A stretch of DNA of 64,000 nucleotides from the NCBI GenBank assembly GCA_020891255.1, contig BQFW01000004.1:248001-312000 (forward strand), in the 5' to 3' direction. The notes under the pieces were generated by a model. That model saw only the letters and a list, made by a program, of their open reading frames with translations. It was not told the DNA's origin and did not search any database. Shown here one piece after another: positions 27,048 through 36,061 of the stretch. Origin of the DNA: Entomortierella parvispora E1425. Lineage: Eukaryota; Fungi; Mortierellomycota. Both the position numbers and the translations under genes were made by a program. Numbering within the stretch: position 1 is the first letter of the stretch; the number at the start of each line of letters is the position of its first letter.

Positions 27048-30000
27048 ATGTCGCACACGACCACCGTGGCCGAGCTGTCCCTCTCCCTGAGCCACGTCCA
27101 GAGTCTGCTCAAGCAGATCACAGCCGAGGTCAAGGTCCTCAGTGACGGGATCGCTGTCCTAGCAGAGCTCGAGGAAACAGGCGATCTGGAGGCTGAGCTG
27201 GATTACCTCGACGTCGATCCCTGGTCCAACGTCAACGACAAGGACAAGACCGCTGCCACAGGCACCGCAACAGCCACCGCAGCGGCTCGACGAGACAGCA
27301 TTCGTTCCCTCTTGCAACGCAGACCCTCGACCGTCAAGGACGAGACAAAAGCCCTGGCCAGGATCTTGAGCCAGAAGCGGACAGGGGCCGGTGGCACCGG
27401 AAGTGGCAGTGAATCTGAAAACAAATCGAGTCAGCACCACCAGGGTCAATCGCAGCCACAGCAGCATGGTGGCTCAAAGTGGTTGACATCCAACTTGCAG
27501 GATCAAGTCATTGAGGAGGATTCAGCTTCGTCAGAAGGCTCGAATTCTTTCCAGGGGGGTCAGCGCAGCGGTGACAAGCAAGAGCTGGAGTCTCCCTCGA
27601 CAGCGACGAACGACGCTTCGGCTTATATGACGATCCAGTCTCTCAATATCGCTTCGACCCCCTCGGCCCCTTCCACCATCCGCCTTGTCGAAGCAGAACG
27701 CGTGCCTCACACGATCTCGGTCCAGACAGCCCACCTTCCAAAGTACTCACTTGCCATCTCAAAGCCTGCGGCGACACCTGTTCTCTCGACCTCTTCCAGT
27801 CAGGGATCCATTCTGGGTGCCTTTGGAGGAACCAACAACATGCTAAACAACAACGGCAGCAATGCTTCTGGGCTGGGAAATCCAGCGGTGCAACCACCCT
27901 ATCATCGGTCTCAGACAGCTCCCAATGTAGACATCAACAACTCCCGGCCAGGTTCTGCCAGTGGCAACTTTGGACAAGGAGACAGCAGGAGTGGCTCAGC
28001 TTCCAGCGTAAGCGGATGTTTTGATGGCTCAGTTTTGTGTACTGTGTCCTCGACCAGGGGTGAGGCTAACAATAACGAGCACATTGGGTGACCATTTGTT
28101 TTGAAAATAGACAATGCGCGGTCGACCCCCTTCCTCAGTCATGGACTCTAGAGCCTCTTCCGAGGTTCACATGGTTGGCCAGACCAGCAGCATTAAGGAT
28201 CGATACAGTGTATGCTCCTTCCCTTTAATATCCTGTCATGCTTGAACGAATGTGCAGTTTCTTTGACTGTGGGGCTTCTAACTGCTATACCGACGGATCA
28301 ATTCAAAAATAGGCTCTTCGATCAGCTTCTCAGGGAACCATTATCCATCCAGCGGTCGGCAGGGACACAGTGAAGTCGACGGTTGTGGTAAAACCACCTT
28401 CACCCATGTCAGCTGCTCAGGTTGAAAAGATAGAGTCTGCAGACTGCTTCAGCAAACTTGGATTGATACCAGAGCTCTTGCGAGGCATCTACGCCTATGG
28501 GTAAACAACGACGGATGCAGTGCCACATCGTTTTTGTTTTCTGTTGTGCAATAATCCGAACTTTGTGAGACTCACCTGGAGAGAGATTCCTGTTTCTGTC
28601 GACTCACTATTTCATAGACTGAAGATGCCGTCCATACTGCAGCAACGCGGGATTCCCATGATCATGACCAAGCATGATGTGCTGATGCAGGCAAAGCCAG
28701 AGGTGGCAAAGACCTTGACCTACGCGATCCCTCTGCTCCACTTTTTGACCTTGCCAGCAACATCAATCCATCCTCAGTTGATCATCCTGTGTTCGAATAA
28801 CGATCTCTGTCAACATGTCCAAAGAGTTCTTCTGGCCTTGGCTAGATTCATGCCCACGATCTCGTGTCTGGTCTGCGCGGAAGGAAGCAACGCCACTCTA
28901 TCTCTGGGAACAATATCTTCTACTCAAGTGAACGTAGCAGGGCATGGAGGTCGGGTTCAGAATCAAGGATTCAGCAACTCTGGAAAAGCGCAGGACCCAT
29001 TGCCGTACATTGCAGCCCACGTCGTAATCGGCACCCCTGGCAAAGTCTTGAATTTGGTGCGGACCAAACAACTTGGACTCTCAGCCCTCAAGGTGATGGT
29101 GTTGGAGAATGCGGATATTCTGCTTGTATCGCCACTGAAGGAGGCTACTGTGAGCTTACTGTCGATAGTCAGAGATACGAGCTCGGTGTCGCCTTCGACT
29201 ACGTCAACAGCAACAGGTCCATCGAGTTCAGCATCAGCACCGGTTTTGGCCTCACCTCCAAATTCCGGGCCAACCTCTCCTGTGTCCTTGGCTGTGGCAG
29301 CCTTGAATGGAAGAATCATGGCCTCCAACTCTGGAAGTGGAACAAACATTGGCCGATTCCCTGGAAGTTATGGCGATGGAATCAACAGCAGTGGCGATAT
29401 TGGAGGGCGGCCACGATCCATGTCCAACGCCACTCCACCGCCATCCACTTCTGGACCCAACTCTACAGCATCCGCCACGGCCGCGACGGCGAGTTCTATA
29501 TCAGCACCACCCCAGCTCCTCTTCTTTTCGACCCTGGTGCCCTCTTATGTGTTGGATTACGTGGCTCAATACACGATTCAACCGACCAAAGCTCTTGTCA
29601 AAGGACATGATTTGGCTCTGAAGGGTATCTTGCAGTTTTTCAAGTACCTGACCGGCGAGGACGACGATTGGCGGCTGGAATCACTCTGTGATCTGTTGGA
29701 GGACAGTGGCGCCAACCGCACCGTCATCTTTTGTAACGGGGATGAGTCTGTCGAAAGAGTTGTTCGGAGAATCCGGGAGGCCAAAGGAACTGCCATTGGC
29801 GTGGTAGGTGACGATACTTGAATGTCTATGCGTCCGGGAACGTTGTGATTGCTGACCATTCTTGCTGGCGCCTGCTCTTTTTTTTTTTTTTTTTTTTTTT
29901 TTCTTTTTTTCGAATGATAGTATACTGAAATGGACGTGGCAGAAAAAAAGTCGGCCTTGGGATGGTTCAGATCCGCAATTGCGCCTTCATATTTCGTGCT

Positions 30001-30446
30001 ATCGGATGAGGCAGCCAAGGATCTGGATATTTTGGCGGTTCCATTGGTTGTGAGTTTCGAGGTGCCCAGTATCTCGCACTATATACCAAGGTAACAGATC
30101 GATTGCAGAATGAGACTTTTACAAGGCCAGTGCAGCAGACATGAGACTAACGGTTCTTTGTGCGATATCTTTATTGTTCCTGACAATATAGAGTGAAGTG
30201 GATTGATCGGTCGAATGGGCGGGTGGGTGTGAAGGTTACATTAGTCGATGGACAGCGCGGTGAAGGACAGGCACTCCGAGCCATTCAACAACATTATCGA
30301 ACCACGATAGATGATATACCGGTAAGTGCGAACATCACGTAGAGAGGCAGAGCTGTTTGTCAGCAAAAGGAGAAACAACCCGACTCACCCTTTGCCGACC
30401 CAATTTCAATATTTAGCCAAGCATTGCCGAGTTTATAGTCAACTAA
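27048..30446 (+). CDS. eIF4A-derived DEAD-box pseudo-helicase with long N-terminal extension (7 exons: 27048-28007, 28111-28209, 28313-28500, 28618-29803, 29921-30090, 30192-30321, 30417-30446)
   Basis: Q-motif [26 protein letters not shown], followed by degenerate motifs: I AKPEVAKT, Ia SNNDLC, Ib TPGKV, II ENAD, III STL, IV VIFCN, V AKDLD, VI PRVKWIDR. All splice sites are GT-AG and keep the frame. Confidence 0.85.
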
Positions 30447-30600
30447 AGCCGTGTCCACTGTAGACATGAATAAAATCGGTCCTGACTGACCGTCGGAGCC
30501 GTACAGGAGCTACATATGGTTCTTTTACATCTCGACTTGATAGGTCTATGTAAAGGAATCAACAACATTTATTTCTTGGGCAATTTTCAAGTTTACCAAA

Positions 30601-31982
30601 CTACCGTGGCAATTCAGGTAAACCCAGGAGGGAACGAAGTTCATTGACATTTATCAGAACCTCTATTTGCGCTCCAGCGATTGTTACTCTCATCGGTGCC
30701 TCTACTGCTCGCTGCTCTTCGTGAGCTGTTTGCTGCTGTTGTTCGCGGGCTGCTCGTGCCGCTCGGTGTTGTTCGCGGGCTGCTTGATGTTGTTCACGGG
30801 CAGCTTGCTGTTGTAGTTCGCGGGCAACTCGTTTTCGTTCGCGGGCTGCTTGTTGCTCTTCGTACGCTGCTCGCCGTTCTTCGTCGGCTGCTTCTGATTG
30901 ACGCTGGCTAGGTTTAGGGGGCAGGAGCCCAAGAAGGCGCATCCTTTGCCTAGCCGCTATGCCTTCTTCGACAGTGTCATAAACAATGCCCGATCCGACT
31001 GGTCCCAGACGCTGCACGAATTCTGACCAGGGAACAGTTCCCAAGTCCGACGTGGGTGGTGCTCGTGCTGGTCGGGATGATACTAGACGAGCTGGTGCCG
31101 AACGAGCCGCTGCTGCTACTGGTGCTGGTGCTGGTGCCGCTGTCGCTGTCGGTTCCATGGTGGATCCAGCAGTGGATTTCGCCTTTCGCTCCCGCAAATA
31201 GACATAGACGTTGCAAACGACCTCCCCTTTCCGACTCTTTCTGTGAAATTCTTTTAACCAGGCAGTGTATAAAAGGCTATTGCAATTTGCACTGTTCAGA
31301 CTTGAGTAGGACATGGCAGTAGATGAGTGAAGACGTTGAAGATAAGGGTGGGCGCCACGCTCCCATTCCACATCCAGGTCTTGCTGAATAGTGTCCACTT
31401 TTTGTTTTATCTTGCGGCAGAGAAGGTCAAAGCCATCGACATGCCAGGAGTAGTAAAGAGCCGTTGGACCTGGGAGAGAGTCCCGCGGGCGCGTCTGAGT
31501 GAGAGGTTTGCCAATCCGAAAGTGAAGGACAAGAATGATCCGGTCGGGCACGGTGGCGGTGGCGGTTTCTGGTTCAGCTTGTTGAACGGGACGAGAGGGA
31601 TCGTTTTTCGCAGTATCATTCGAGTCTGCATTCACAGGGCTGGTGGTGCTGGACGATGCATTGGGGCGGGGTACTGGGGCCATTTTCAACCGCTTGTGTT
31701 GTGTTAGATAACAAATAAAAACTCGTTCTTGCTCTCAGCCAAACTTTTTCTTTTCTTCGAACCTGGTTCAGGAGCTGAGGGAGGGGTGGCCTTGGCAGGG
31801 GCTGCAGTCGTGGAAGTAGCGGCGTCGGCAGGGGAAGGTTGGTCGACAGGAGCGACTGTGGCTGCGGTGGTGGTGGTGATGGTGGGGGCGGAGGAGGTGG
31901 AAGAAGTCCGTTGCTCCTTTGCCTCTGAAGAGGAAGTCTCAGGCGGTGGTGCCTTCAGAGTGCGACGTTTCTTTGGCGGCAT
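30601..31982 (-). CDS. Hypothetical protein: basic N-terminus, central globular domain, AREQ coiled-coil repeats (probable intron 31674-31762)
   Basis: A 362-aa ORF plus an upstream 92-aa ORF (MPPKKRR) can be joined by a GT..CTAAC..CAG intron. Globular segments are IILVLHFRIGK...VCNVYVYLRE and the C-terminal VTIAGAQIEVLINVNELRSLLGLP. Confidence 0.6.
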
Positions 31983-32380
31983 GAGGCAAGAATGAAAGAA
32001 TGAGGTGCATGTAGACTTGAATGTGGAATGTGATCAACGGCTTGAACACATTCAACTATTTCAGTGCGGCCTGGAATTTGAGCGCAATTCCGACGTGAAG
32101 TTGATGCAGGTCTGTGCGACAGCAGTCTGCCAAGGACCACGTTCAGGACAGAAGGGCAAACAACGGGCCATGAGGCCATATATCCACTTAGAGAGGTTGG
32201 GAGGTCAATGAGAGAGGTCGGATGTTTAAAGAGAGAGGTTGAAGAGGTTGAAAGAGAGGTCGAGGGATCAAAGCGAGAGGCTGGGTGGTCACATAGGGAT
32301 TCGATTCAAAGAGAGAGAGGTTGAGAGGGTGGAGGTCGAGGGGTCTTCTTTTCATTCATTCATTCATTCATCCCTCTCTC

Positions 32381-34238
32381 ATGTCTTCCTGTCAGCCTCA
32401 TGAGGACGCGCCAGTCTTTCGCGTCATTGCCATTCCGCACCTGTGCGACGGCATTGCCCAGCATCTCCGTCCACGCGATGCGCTGCGTGCCCTTCAGACG
32501 TGCAGAGACTTTTATACGGCTTTCCTGCCGTATCGATGGAGAACCCTGGAGAGCGAGCTGTTTGCTGAGGAGTATTACCAAACCATCTTCCCTGATCATC
32601 CTACTCCCGAAGTAGAATCAGCGCTGGTCAGCTACGGTGCCGGGTTCGTGCGACACATCAACTTTTCTTTTGAGCAGAGTCGACTCAGCGAGCTCCTATT
32701 GGAGAACGGGCTGCACTGCTCGCGACTTGAAAGTATCCGACAACATGGCCATTTGGACGAAGAATTGCCATCGAACCGCCGCATGCACTGGTGGAATTGC
32801 GAGGGCATCTGCGGGCACTATAACAACATCAGTTTCACAGCATGGTATTCTACCACCATTCCCTTAAGGACCCTTGTGCTCGATATGGCCTACAGAAACT
32901 CCTCGACCCTCCAAAGTCTGATTCTGGAAGCCATGTCGAATCCCACGGAGCCAATGACCTTTCTCACAGAACTCACCAGAGTTATTCCTTTACTCGAGAA
33001 TCTGAAAGTGCTAAAGCTCGGGTGTATGCCATGGGTGACCGCCGTGAACATGTTTCTTCGCTTACCGCCTAGAGTGGAGGATCTGGCGTTGAGGGTCTGC
33101 CAAAAAGTAACAACGGAATTTGATAAAGGAAGCGACGACGACATTAGAGCTGTGGGGACATCAAGGAGAGCGGTTTGGGCGCTCAAGGATGACTTGACCA
33201 ACATGGCCACCAAAGCCAGTGTGACGAAACTGAGTCTCGTTTGGACCTGTGATCCAGATCTCATGTGGATTGTGTACGAGATGTTGGGCCATTGCCCCAA
33301 CTTGAGATCGCTCCGTCTCCCTTACATCTACGAGAGCCGGGTCGACGGCTTCTTCTCGACCGTTGCTACCAATTGGCCAAGAAAGCTCGAGGAGCTGGAT
33401 TTGTCAAAGTTTGCGGCCAGGGACTGCGAATACGCGGATTTCTTGAACACTATCTTTCCTAACCACGAGGAGACAAGAGAGGAGTCTGGAGCGGGTTTAA
33501 GATCCATCACGCTCCATGGCGAATACGAATGTGGAATACAGTTCAAGAGCGCTTTGGCCGGTCACGTTTCCACACTGGAGAGGATTTCCGTCTTTGGTTG
33601 TGGACAAACCATTCGTAGTCGGGACATCTTGGCCTGGCTCGAAAATTTGTCCTCGATTGGATACGTTGCTCATGTTTGACACTTGTGAGCTGAACCCAGA
33701 AGACCCTTCGCCAACGGTTAACTGGAGTGAATTCCAACGGAGCAGGAGCGGGACCACGGCGGACCAATCTATCACATCCAGCTTGTCGTCCGCGCTACCG
33801 TCGACAGCATCGCCCGTGGTGTCAAGCCCTTGTCTGTGGGCATGCGTCCGGACACTAAGAGTGCTTTCGCTCTTTCTACACATCAAAGCCACCACACGTA
33901 TCGAAGATGTTCCTGCACTTACTGAAGGAGTTTATCGTAGGCTGGGCCAACTGGAGGCTTTGGAGGACTTGGCTCTAGGCTGCGAAACCGCTTCAATTCG
34001 TGTCAAGTCTGATAGCAAGGACCCCCTCATTCCCCAAGACAAGGAATATGTCCGGGTGACATTAAACTGCTCACTGGATCAAGGCCTTGGGCACATGGCA
34101 TCCCTCAAGAAGCTTAGACGCCTCAATGTGGAAATGCTGTCTAGGATCAAGATAGGTCAAGCTGAGCGCGAATGGATGAAGAAACACTGGCCGTTGTTTG
34201 AGACCTTGCATGGTGCGCCCATGCGCAAAAAGCTGTGA
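32381..34238 (+). pseudogene. F-box/LRR (RNI-like) protein gene interrupted by a +1 frameshift (pseudogene or sequencing error)
   Basis: F-box-like start VIAIPHLCDGIAQHLRPRDALRALQTCRDF and LRR repeats (HCPNLRSLRL). The frame switches at GAAAATTTGTCCT (33646-33648), restoring LENCPRLDTL. The C-terminus is LWACVRTLRVLSL..VYRRLGQLEALEDLALG..EREWMKKHWP. Confidence 0.75.
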
Positions 34239-34504
34239 CTGCTCTTGGTATCTCATGTTGGTGGCAAACGCGGATTTTCTTTTTTTTTTTTGTTTGCGAC
34301 GCAGCAATCTGTGAAAGATCGATCCATTACATGTCTGGCCCAATCAAGTGCTGTTGCCGAGTTGTCCCTTGGTCCTTGCTGGGCTAGGCAAAAAGATGGA
34401 ACAGGTGAAGGTCCTCTATCTATGCCATATGCCATTGCTGCGGCAGGTTGAATCATTAAGATTGTCTAGTTTGAATAAACGGGCCGCAGGATCCGAAATG
34501 GCTC

Positions 34505-34511
34505 TATAAAA
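34505..34511 (+). promoter_or_regulatory. Putative TATA box of eIF4A gene
   Basis: TATAAAA about 40 bp upstream of the ATG at 34550. Confidence 0.5.
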
Positions 34512-34549
34512 GGACCGCGCGTCTCAGCTGGAATTGGTTCTGCACCCAC

Positions 34550-36061
34550 ATGTCCATTACTACAATTCAACAGGCTAACAATGGCCTCCCAGTGCACGAG
34601 AACGAGATCGAGGTATCGTCCCCGCATCCCTATCCCCTGCCCCTTGAAATAAACCCGAGGGTTTTACGATCCATTCCACTCACCCTGTAACCCATTCTCA
34701 TCTTTGTATAGTCCAATTGGGACGAGATCATCGACAGCTTTGACGACTTGAACTTGACTCCCGAACTGCTTAGAGGTATCTATGCCTTTGGGTACGTCTC
34801 ACGTAGCCTCGATAGGACATGTCTTCCCAACCTTCCCTGAATAGACACTCACTTTTTTCTTTCTTTGTTGGGCTACTCTCTTCTCTCTACCACAGCTTTG
34901 AACGTCCATCTGCTATTCAACAACGAGCTATCGCACCTGTGATCGCAGGTCGCGACATGATTGCTCAAGCCCAGTCAGGCACAGGCAAGACGGCGACCTT
35001 TTCGATTTCTGTCCTCCAGAACATTGACATGTCGCAAAAGGCCTGTCAAGCCCTGATCCTGGTCCCCACCCGAGAACTGGCGCTCCAGATCCGAGGTGTG
35101 ATCTTGGCCTTGGGGGATTTCCTCAAGGTCGATTGCTTGGCCTGCATCGGGGGCACCAGCATTCAAGAATCCATCCGCCGGTTGGCGGACGGTGTTCAGG
35201 TCGTGGTCGGGACGCCCGGTCGTGTCCTGGACATGATCCAACGCGGGATCCTCCCCACCCAACATGTCAAGATGATGGTCCTCGACGAGGCCGATGAGAT
35301 GTTGCTGGATTTCCGTGAGGCCGTGTACGATGTCTTTCAGCATCTCCCCAAAACGGTGCAGGTCGCCTTGTTGTCGGCTACCATGCCCGACGAGGTCTTG
35401 GCCGTGACGACAAAGTTCATGTCGAACCCTGTTCACATCTTGGTCAAGAATGAAGAGGTGACCTTGGAAGGTAAAAGGCGATGCCAAACAGACGGTGTTG
35501 TAGCTCAGCCAGGATGATCTGTTTTCTCTACTCTCAACACAAGACTGTTTTTTTTTCTTCTTGACCTTGCCAGGTATCAAGCAGTTTTATGTAAATGTTC
35601 AAAAGGAAGAGTGGAAGCTGGACACTCTTTGCGACATCTACGAGACTTTGACCATCACGCAGGCGGTCATCTTTTGCTCGACCCGCCGAAAGGTCGAGAT
35701 GTTGAAGGAGCAGCTGACAGAGCGCGATTTCACGGTCTCGGCCATTCATGGGTCCATGGAGCAGTCTGAGCGTGAGACGATCATGAAAGAGTTCCGATCG
35801 GGCTCCTCCCGCGTCTTGATTGCCACGGATCTGTTGGCGCGCGGCATCGACATTCAGCAGGTCTCGTTGGTGATCAATTTTGATTTGCCAACCAACAAGG
35901 AGAACTATGTCCATCGCATCGGTCGTGGCGGTCGATTCGGTCGAAAGGGTGTGTCGATCAACTTTTTGACCGACAGAGACGCACCCATGCTCAAGGAGAT
36001 CGAGAGATTCTATAGCACTCAGATCACAGAGATGCCCATGAACATTGCAGATCTCATGTAG
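34550..36061 (+). CDS. tif1: Translation initiation factor eIF4A-family DEAD-box RNA helicase (exons 34550-34612, 34712-34791, 34896-35470, 35574-36061)
   Basis: All canonical motifs are present: Q-motif, [40 protein letters not shown] and [13 protein letters not shown]. Confidence 0.95.

Follow-up and report, generated by a model that had tools for sequence, protein, structure and literature searches.

The window analysed here is the whole of a 64,000-nucleotide stretch of DNA from Entomortierella parvispora E1425. On its forward strand, at 27048-30446, lies a gene for a protein with the fold of the DEAD-box RNA helicase eIF4A, in which most of the catalytic motifs have been replaced; we refer to it as the pseudohelicase. 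The gene, a live one, is conserved throughout the Mortierellomycotina under strong purifying selection. Rebuilt from the raw sequence, it has seven exons and a coding sequence of 2763 nt, which specifies 920 amino acids (aa) plus a stop codon and is open throughout. All six introns are of the GT..AG type, each 95-117 nt long. The exons are as follows.

27048-28007, forward strand: exon 1, aa 1-320; start codon, N-terminal helix, conserved linear motifs and a low-complexity region, with the N-terminus conserved in the orthologues
28111-28209, forward strand: exon 2, aa 321-353; disordered
28313-28500, forward strand: exon 3, aa 354-416; ends in phase 2 within the Gly codon of the YAYG Q-motif block
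28618-29803, forward strand: exon 4, aa 416-811; RecA1, whose motifs I, Ia, II and III are dead, the two inserts and the beginning of RecA2
29921-30090, forward strand: exon 5, aa 812-868; RecA2 with the motif V remnant
30192-30321, forward strand: exon 6, aa 868-911; the motif VI remnant straddles the exon 5/6 intron
30417-30446, forward strand: exon 7, the final 9 aa and the stop codon; eIF4A-like C-terminal tail

A run of about 40 T is present within intron 4 (29867-29911).

Transcripts were found for a Linnemannia-type orthologue (P0190, 909 aa). Its complete frame of 909 codons is carried, uninterrupted, on intronless contigs of 2.8-3.0 kb, which were assembled independently from five runs (SRR6256856-60). 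A genomic copy would have introns, as the genes of three genera do, so these contigs represent spliced mRNA. The encoded protein is collinear with that of the window over all six exon junctions, and in the five runs the contigs stop about 80 nt past the stop codon of the pseudohelicase, without fusion to a neighbouring gene. An earlier reading of this DNA made from the letters alone (the sequence-only reading) had described the frame as intact over seven exons and had named a lack of expression as something that would speak against its interpretation; the rebuilt model bears out the former, and in a relative the orthologue is both transcribed and spliced.

Motifs of the RecA core and the N-terminal region

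The pseudohelicase is collinear with the eIF4A paralogue encoded downstream in the window (34550-36061) across both RecA domains to the final residues, and BLASTP between the two gives 30% identity (E = 6e-24) and 27% identity (E = 2e-22). The Pfam family DEAD matches exon 4 (E = 4e-12), and orthologues match both DEAD and Helicase_C. An AlphaFold2 (AF2) model was obtained for the Gryganskiella orthologue from an alignment of 53 sequences (residue numbers quoted from this model are those of the orthologue); RecA1 and RecA2 are both predicted with confidence. In Foldseek, the best matches are eIF4A1, eIF4A3 and yeast eIF4A, with E about 1e-26. The two RecA-like domains expected of the DEAD-box/eIF4A fold are thus found by Pfam, AF2 and Foldseek. 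The state of the motifs within the core is as follows.

28445-28645, forward strand: Q-motif block, retained; aa 398-425, spanning intron 3, with the upstream Phe and the Gln kept
28691-28714, forward strand: motif I remnant, AQSGTGKT to AKPEVAKT; Walker glycines changed to Glu and Ala, Lys-Thr kept
28793-28810, forward strand: motif Ia remnant, PTRELA to SNNDLC
29105-29116, forward strand: motif II remnant, DEAD to ENAD; catalytic Glu changed to Asn
29528-29536, forward strand: motif III remnant, SAT to STL
30014-30028, forward strand: motif V remnant, ARGID to AKDLD
30086-30210, forward strand: motif VI remnant, HRIGRGGR to PRVKWIDR, across an intron

The Q-motif reads F...GLKMPSILQ, with the upstream Phe and the consensus G-[FL]-x-x-P-[ST]-x-x-Q both in place; its Phe and Gln are invariant in 53/53 aligned sequences, comprising pseudohelicases, Glomeromycotina proteins and canonical eIF4A. 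Motifs Ib (TPGK) and IV (VIFCN, or V[IV]FCN in the family) are also kept. Motifs I, Ia, II, III, GG, V and VI, on the other hand, no longer have the sequence of a DEAD-box enzyme. The GG motif reads EGS in the family, and motif III reads STL or STE across the orthologues. In 35 orthologues, the replaced motifs QAKPEVAKT, SNhDLC, ENAD and PRVkWiDR are conserved to at least 90%. The sequence-only reading had listed a conserved Q-motif next to AKPEVAKT, SNNDLC, ENAD, STL, AKDLD and PRVKWIDR, and every listed change is present.

The DEAD-box cycle requires the P-loop glycines and the Lys-Thr pair, the Glu of motif II, coupling by motif III and the arginines of motif VI, while motifs Ia, GG and V hold the RNA in the closed state. 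The pseudohelicase has lost the Walker glycines, motif III, the Glu of motif II and the RNA-binding motifs Ia and V; of the two arginines in motif VI that contact phosphate, one is gone. We therefore infer that an ATP-driven RNA clamping cycle is impossible. The motif chemistry predicts a catalytically dead protein.

Outside the core motifs, the N-terminal region and the inserts contain these elements.

27066-27176, forward strand: heptad (coiled-coil-like) helix, aa 7-43; repeat read directly from the sequence
27204-27227, forward strand: YLDVDPWS motif, aa 53-60; invariant in 12 orthologues
27288-27377, forward strand: RRDSIRSLLQRRPSTVKDETKALARILSQK block, aa 81-110; two basophilic-kinase-type sites (RRxS, RRPS) and a short helix
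28886-29005, forward strand: insert 1, aa 506-545, at the position of the GG loop; NATLSLGT..STTQVN conserved
29171-29512, forward strand: insert 2, aa 601-714; rich in S, T, P and G

The N-terminal extension, put earlier at about 380 residues starting with a coiled-coil-like segment, measures about 390 and does start with such a segment, a helix of five heptads. The a and d positions of this helix are hydrophobic throughout (V7, L10, L14, V17, L21, I24, V28, L31, I35 and L38), and the block is near-invariant in 12 genera. In the AF2 model, it is a helix from 7 to 45 with a predicted local distance difference test score (pLDDT) of 87-94; a short helix follows at 95-107 and disorder extends from 109 to 412. 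For the protein of the window, the disorder amounts to about 350 residues. Across the 12 genera, the invariant blocks of the disordered region are YLDVDPWS, R.DSIRSL.QR.PSTVKDETKALARILS, ERVPHTI.VQT and FWRS. The PSTVKDETKALARILS sequence is invariant in 12 orthologues, and the R..SIR portion aligns with Glomeromycotina proteins. Two of the invariant N-terminal blocks carry what read as basophilic-kinase consensus sites. The N-terminal region matches no Pfam family, and the ESM Atlas contains nothing informative that resembles it (best score 0.60).

Two S/T/G-rich inserts had also been proposed, and two inserts are indeed present. At the position of the GG loop, the model of the Gryganskiella orthologue has an additional beta hairpin (523-537). 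Insert 2 carries a conserved SPPNSGPTSPVS.AVAALNGRI element (29252-29317), and a helix at 661-673 is modelled within it with a pLDDT of about 72.

Descent, distribution and constraint

Among solved structures in the PDB, the pseudohelicase matches eIF4A-III (4e-56), eIF4A-I (1e-49) and yeast eIF4A (3e-43) by sequence, far above DDX6, DDX39B (DDX39) and DDX19. In a maximum-likelihood tree with Ded1 as the outgroup, 13 pseudohelicases form a clade (100/100) on a stem of 2.16 substitutions per site, and the family is nested in the eIF4A group (99/98). The proposed derivation from eIF4A is therefore upheld by BLASTP, PDB ranking, Foldseek and the tree alike. Clustering with an already characterised DEAD-box subfamily had been regarded beforehand as a result that would count against the reading; the family falls inside the eIF4A group, and not with Utp25. 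Identity with Utp25 was rejected, as neither the window pieces nor the full-length orthologues match Pfam Utp25_C (PF06862).

Every pseudohelicase and Glomeromycotina protein tested scores higher with a canonical fungal eIF4A than with an eIF4A-III-like protein. Human eIF4A-III scores slightly above human eIF4A-I against the pseudohelicase, and the tree, which includes no bona fide fungal Fal1, does not separate I from III. The intron at the end of exon 3, in the Gly codon of the Q-motif block, is present at the same position and in the same phase in all eIF4A-type genes examined. An origin as a recent tandem duplicate of the downstream eIF4A is unsupported: the neighbour groups with canonical Mortierellaceae eIF4A while the pseudohelicase branches deep. 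The pseudohelicase gene also keeps two ancestral introns that the neighbour is without. In the approximately unbiased (AU) test, a clade of pseudohelicase and neighbour is not rejected (p = 0.06). The lineage probably arose from an eIF4A-I-type gene before the Mortierellomycotina and Glomeromycotina split.

An exhaustive representative search revealed degenerate eIF4A-like proteins in Rhizophagus, Glomus, Entrophospora and Paraglomus, with an N-terminal extension of their own. In the tree, five of these Glomeromycotina proteins form a clade (100/97) that is sister to the pseudohelicases (100/99). As both clades are long branches, independent characters were sought. The N-termini, which lie outside the tree data, align collinearly in a profile-profile comparison, helix followed by R..SIR block (P = 0.0044). 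The Rhizophagus gene agrees in four intron positions, with equal phase, with the pseudohelicase genes of M. polycephala, Gryganskiella and the window. One of the four is universal in eIF4A genes. Two are present in a sponge eIF4A gene, one of these also in a chytrid gene, and are hence ancestral; neither occurs in the neighbouring paralogue or in the canonical eIF4A genes of Linnemannia, Diversispora and Umbelopsis. The intron before the C-terminal tail was found, among the genes compared, only in pseudohelicase and Glomeromycotina genes. Three common introns were considered as proof of orthology with the Glomeromycotina genes, an argument that was dropped since two are ancestral and only one is specific.

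Derived residues are held in common too: the Q-motif has Leu instead of Phe, motif I has QAK, and Ia opens with Ser. When either group is omitted from the tree, the other still lies deep in fungal eIF4A, apart from the canonical genes of its own subphylum. That an eIF4A-I-type gene was duplicated once, long ago and before the separation of the two subphyla, and that in the Mortierellomycotina a burst of change and then strong constraint followed, is a good deal more probable than the contrary.

The Glomeromycotina proteins (for instance, Rhizophagus irregularis PKC73141.1, annotated as 'Fal1p' or 'eIF4A') resemble the pseudohelicase in that all ATPase motifs are degenerate, and they share with it the N-terminal helix, the R..SIR block and the four intron positions. 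They differ in length (about 560-600 aa), in being without the two inserts and in having other residues at the dead motifs; the Lys-Thr pattern is lost, and their divergence from eIF4A is smaller.

In searches that used exon 4 and a family profile, orthologues were detected in at least 13 genera of the Mortierellomycotina: Mortierella, Podila, Linnemannia, Haplosporangium, Actinomortierella, Entomortierella, Modicella, Dissophora, Gamsiella, Lobosporangium, Gryganskiella, Lunasporangiospora and Benniella. The window's own protein was absent among the orthologues these searches retrieved; the closest relatives are from a metagenome contig (91% identity) and from Gryganskiella cystojenkinii (87% over the core). 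Most orthologues are 820-950 aa long and are named eIF4A, eIF4A-I, eIF4A-III or hypothetical protein in their sources. No orthologue beyond the Mortierellomycotina and Glomeromycotina was found by the profile and exhaustive representative searches. Two weak matches (P0230 and P0231) were rejected as orthologues, both being Ded1-type helicases.

The ratio of non-synonymous to synonymous substitutions (dN/dS) was computed against the closest relative, L006; dS is only about 0.5-0.6, so the comparison is unsaturated. The values are:

Whole protein: 0.09-0.11
RecA1: 0.02-0.03
RecA2: 0.05-0.06
N-terminal region: 0.13-0.17
Second insert: 0.19-0.39, the highest of all parts

For comparison, the intact eIF4A paralogue downstream has a dN/dS of 0.07 against L006. 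The ortholog search and the dN/dS calculation thus agree with the earlier suggestion that the gene is under selection, with dN/dS far below 1 and the replaced motifs fixed across a subphylum. That no equivalent had been described also appears correct, as literature searches, accession numbers included, found no description of the family. Annotation of its members as eIF4A, eIF4A-I, eIF4A-III or Fal1p, in dozens of public records, is misleading.

A proposed role and its alternatives

We estimate at roughly 0.6 the probability that the locus encodes a functional, non-catalytic descendant of eIF4A, a pseudohelicase that acts as an adaptor or competitor on eIF4A-binding partners. Because most parts of the cycle are gone and a hairpin is present at the GG loop, the core may be read as a rigid protein-binding module, in which the two RecA domains would no longer form an enzyme. 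Such a module would keep the eIF4A-like surfaces of the Q-motif block, the first RecA2 helix and the C-terminal tail of RecA2. In yeast eIF4A, R35 and E43 of the Q-motif block belong to a secondary interface with eIF4G (PMC3064780). A MIF4G/MA3-type eIF4A partner is the best guess for the core, since the Q-motif region with the Arg35 contact, the RecA2 helix and the tail are all kept. The kept Arg of the pseudohelicase's Q-motif block is presumably the equivalent of Arg35 in yeast Tif1 numbering. A change of Glu43 to Lys was considered as a sign of tighter eIF4G binding and dropped, since Gryganskiella keeps the Glu.

The five-heptad helix at the N-terminus would serve in dimerisation or partner binding, and the long disordered region might recruit other factors through its invariant, probably phospho-regulated linear motifs. 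In mRNA translation or the control of messenger ribonucleoproteins (mRNPs), the protein would most likely act as an adaptor, or as a competitor, on partners of the MIF4G/MA3 type. We more tentatively envisage an ancient dead eIF4A, kept since before the split between Mortierellomycotina and arbuscular mycorrhizal fungi as a dedicated regulator of eIF4F-type complexes. Its inert RecA core might occupy MIF4G/MA3 partners while the coiled coil and phospho-regulated motifs recruit factors, making it a brake or re-router of cap-dependent translation in coenocytic, plant-associated fungi.

Several points weigh against a non-catalytic adaptor. The catalytic loss is predicted from the motifs, the MIF4G partner is a best guess drawn solely from retained sequence blocks, and, no RNA run being listed for the genome of the window, the expression evidence comes from a relative only. 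In addition, the Walker Lys-Thr, the Q-motif Phe and Gln, the final Asp of motif II and two of the three motif VI arginines are kept, so some nucleotide binding is possible. The chief alternative is that the core binds adenine nucleotide without hydrolysing it and acts either as a locked RNA clamp, like eIF4A-III in the exon junction complex, or as a nucleotide sensor, and not purely as a protein scaffold. Q-motif residues that stay invariant even in the degenerate families, a Lys-Thr pair kept in at least 90% of orthologues, the ENAD of motif II and the retention of Ib (TPGK) and IV (V[IV]FCN) would all be in keeping with this; in DEAD-box mutants, a change of the motif II Glu to Asn or Gln classically impairs hydrolysis more than binding. 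Both P-loop glycines have, however, been replaced (by Glu and Ala), Ia, V and the GG loop needed for a clamp are lost, with a hairpin inserted at the latter, and the Glomeromycotina relatives are without even the Lys-Thr pattern, all of which makes nucleotide binding a rather doubtful function. The same residues of motifs I and II (Lys-Thr and Asp) and the two remaining motif VI arginines might also be invoked for an atypical ATPase or helicase that is still active by means of substitute residues. This is highly improbable, given the simultaneous loss of the P-loop glycines, the catalytic Glu, motif III and, in motif VI, the middle arginine; we know of no DEAD-box enzyme that works without these.

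It is also conceivable, if unlikely, that the pseudohelicase pairs with the downstream eIF4A paralogue as an inactive and an active cassette, comparable to Brr2, either as separate proteins or by an occasional read-through fusion. An eIF4A-like gene lies downstream in M. polycephala, L006 and (partial) Gryganskiella, and four public models are fused; eIF4A-like units are found on the same contigs in Dissophora and Benniella. Since the last intron of the pseudohelicase has its donor, and the first intron of the neighbour its acceptor, in phase 0, a splice between the two would be in frame. Against this, the transcripts of five runs end about 80 nt past the stop codon without fusion, 4.1 kb with other reading frames part the two genes in the window, the fused Actinomortierella model enters non-helicase sequence, and the Rhizophagus gene has no eIF4A neighbour. 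The neighbour decays or multiplies in some genera, and the adjacency may be a relic of tandem duplication. Partly degenerate eIF4A paralogues, which occur sporadically in other eukaryotes and in the adjoining tandem arrays, could suggest a decaying duplicate or an annotation artefact without function. With a frame intact over seven exons, dN/dS of 0.02-0.11, invariant replaced motifs in at least 13 genera and spliced transcripts in a relative, we regard this as the least credible explanation of all.

A function as a decoy for eIF4A inhibitors, raised by the sequence-only reading, is disfavoured. Rocaglates contact Phe163, Gln195 and Asp198 in human eIF4A1 (PMC8001013); the aligned residues of the pseudohelicase are Leu, Ala and Ser, and the RNA-clamp motifs that the drug pocket needs are degenerate as well.

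Compared with eIF4A of the eIF4A-I type (yeast Tif1/2, human EIF4A1), one of its nearest known systems, the pseudohelicase has two RecA domains that are collinear from Q-motif to C-terminal tail (27-30% identity), and it retains the opening helix of RecA2 along with the Q-motif, Ib and IV; three of its intron positions are found in canonical eIF4A genes of other lineages. It is unlike eIF4A-I in its replaced motifs I, Ia, II, III, V and VI, its 390-residue N-terminal extension and two inserts, and its very long stem branch (2.2 substitutions per site) followed by strong conservation. eIF4A-III/Fal1, the best-scoring solved relative (4e-56), is likewise a helicase that serves as a locked, non-cycling platform, but it keeps all catalytic motifs and clamps RNA with ATP. 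Utp25 works as a structural component; its fold is that of a DEAD-box protein, its motifs are dispensable or degenerate, and an accessory region lies at its N-terminus (PMC9539457). Utp25/Def, of the small-subunit (SSU) processome, resembles the pseudohelicase in concept only, as a helicase fold reused as a scaffold; it is a separate, pan-eukaryotic family, whereas the pseudohelicase is derived from eIF4A and restricted to Mucoromycota lineages. In the CPUG complex of C. elegans, the inactive helicase fold of MUT-15 organises and licenses partner enzymes (preprint 10.64898/2026.09.04.749402). This analogy is also one of concept; there is no evidence for a shared ancestor or for a part in small-RNA pathways.

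Partly degenerate or duplicated eIF4A-like proteins were noted in Pelomyxa (P0046), Marasmius (P0072), Thecamoeba (P0087), Chara (P0022) and Camellia (P0021). They appear unrelated to the pseudohelicase family, and these sporadic cases indicate that degeneration of eIF4A copies is not rare. The family is set apart by the depth of its conservation, by its rebuilt and fixed motifs and by its new N-terminal module.

eIF4A, the archetype of the DEAD-box helicases, is targeted by drugs. A copy that is dead by nature, its active site rebuilt and invariant, shows which surfaces of eIF4A matter besides catalysis, and could bring to light a layer of translation or mRNP control that is specific to the lineage. 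Oleaginous production fungi (Mortierella alpina) belong to this lineage, as do, probably, the arbuscular mycorrhizal fungi. The proteins of the family should not carry an eIF4A, eIF4A-III or Fal1 annotation.

The downstream eIF4A paralogue and the locus

The neighbouring helicase gene lies outside the pseudohelicase gene and is given as context.

34550-36061, forward strand: eIF4A paralogue, 4 exons, 401 aa, all helicase motifs intact

Its identity to canonical Mortierellaceae eIF4A does not exceed 74%. Other residues stand in place of SRGFKDQ, a stretch otherwise conserved after DEAD, and Leu and Ala align with Phe163 and Gln195, the rocaglate contacts in human eIF4A1. The gene evolves under purifying selection (dN/dS 0.07 against L006), and its product may be a specialised or inhibitor-insensitive eIF4A.

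The two genes are parted by about 4.1 kb (30447-34549) with open reading frames at 30601-31689 (reverse strand), 32321-33679 (forward) and 33516-34238 (forward), none of which has a Pfam match. The segment looks like an insertion, for in M. polycephala (L001) and L006 the helicase-type pair is separated by only some 0.5-0.9 kb. An eIF4A-like gene is directly downstream of the pseudohelicase in M. polycephala, in L006, a contig of the European Nucleotide Archive (ENA), and, as a partial gene, in Gryganskiella.

In the public models P0181-P0184 (M. antarctica, M. alpina, Podila humilis and Haplosporangium), pseudohelicase and downstream eIF4A paralogue are joined into one gene. In at least one of them, the donor of the last pseudohelicase intron is joined to the acceptor of the neighbour's first intron; as donor and acceptor are both in phase 0, the fusion is in frame. 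A fused Actinomortierella model runs on into unrelated, non-helicase sequence. Tandem, partly degenerate eIF4A-like units are present on the pseudohelicase contigs of Dissophora (P0018/P0019) and Benniella (P0078/P0104), and the Haplosporangium neighbour (the C-terminal part of P0184) is degenerate as well. The locus seems to keep producing and eroding eIF4A copies. No eIF4A neighbour was found at the Rhizophagus locus, in which that gene differs from the pseudohelicase.

A gene for a TNT-domain protein lies downstream of the eIF4A pair in L006 (8740-9282), and likewise in the window near 38.4-39.3 kb. With this gene common to both, synteny reaches past the two helicase-type genes.

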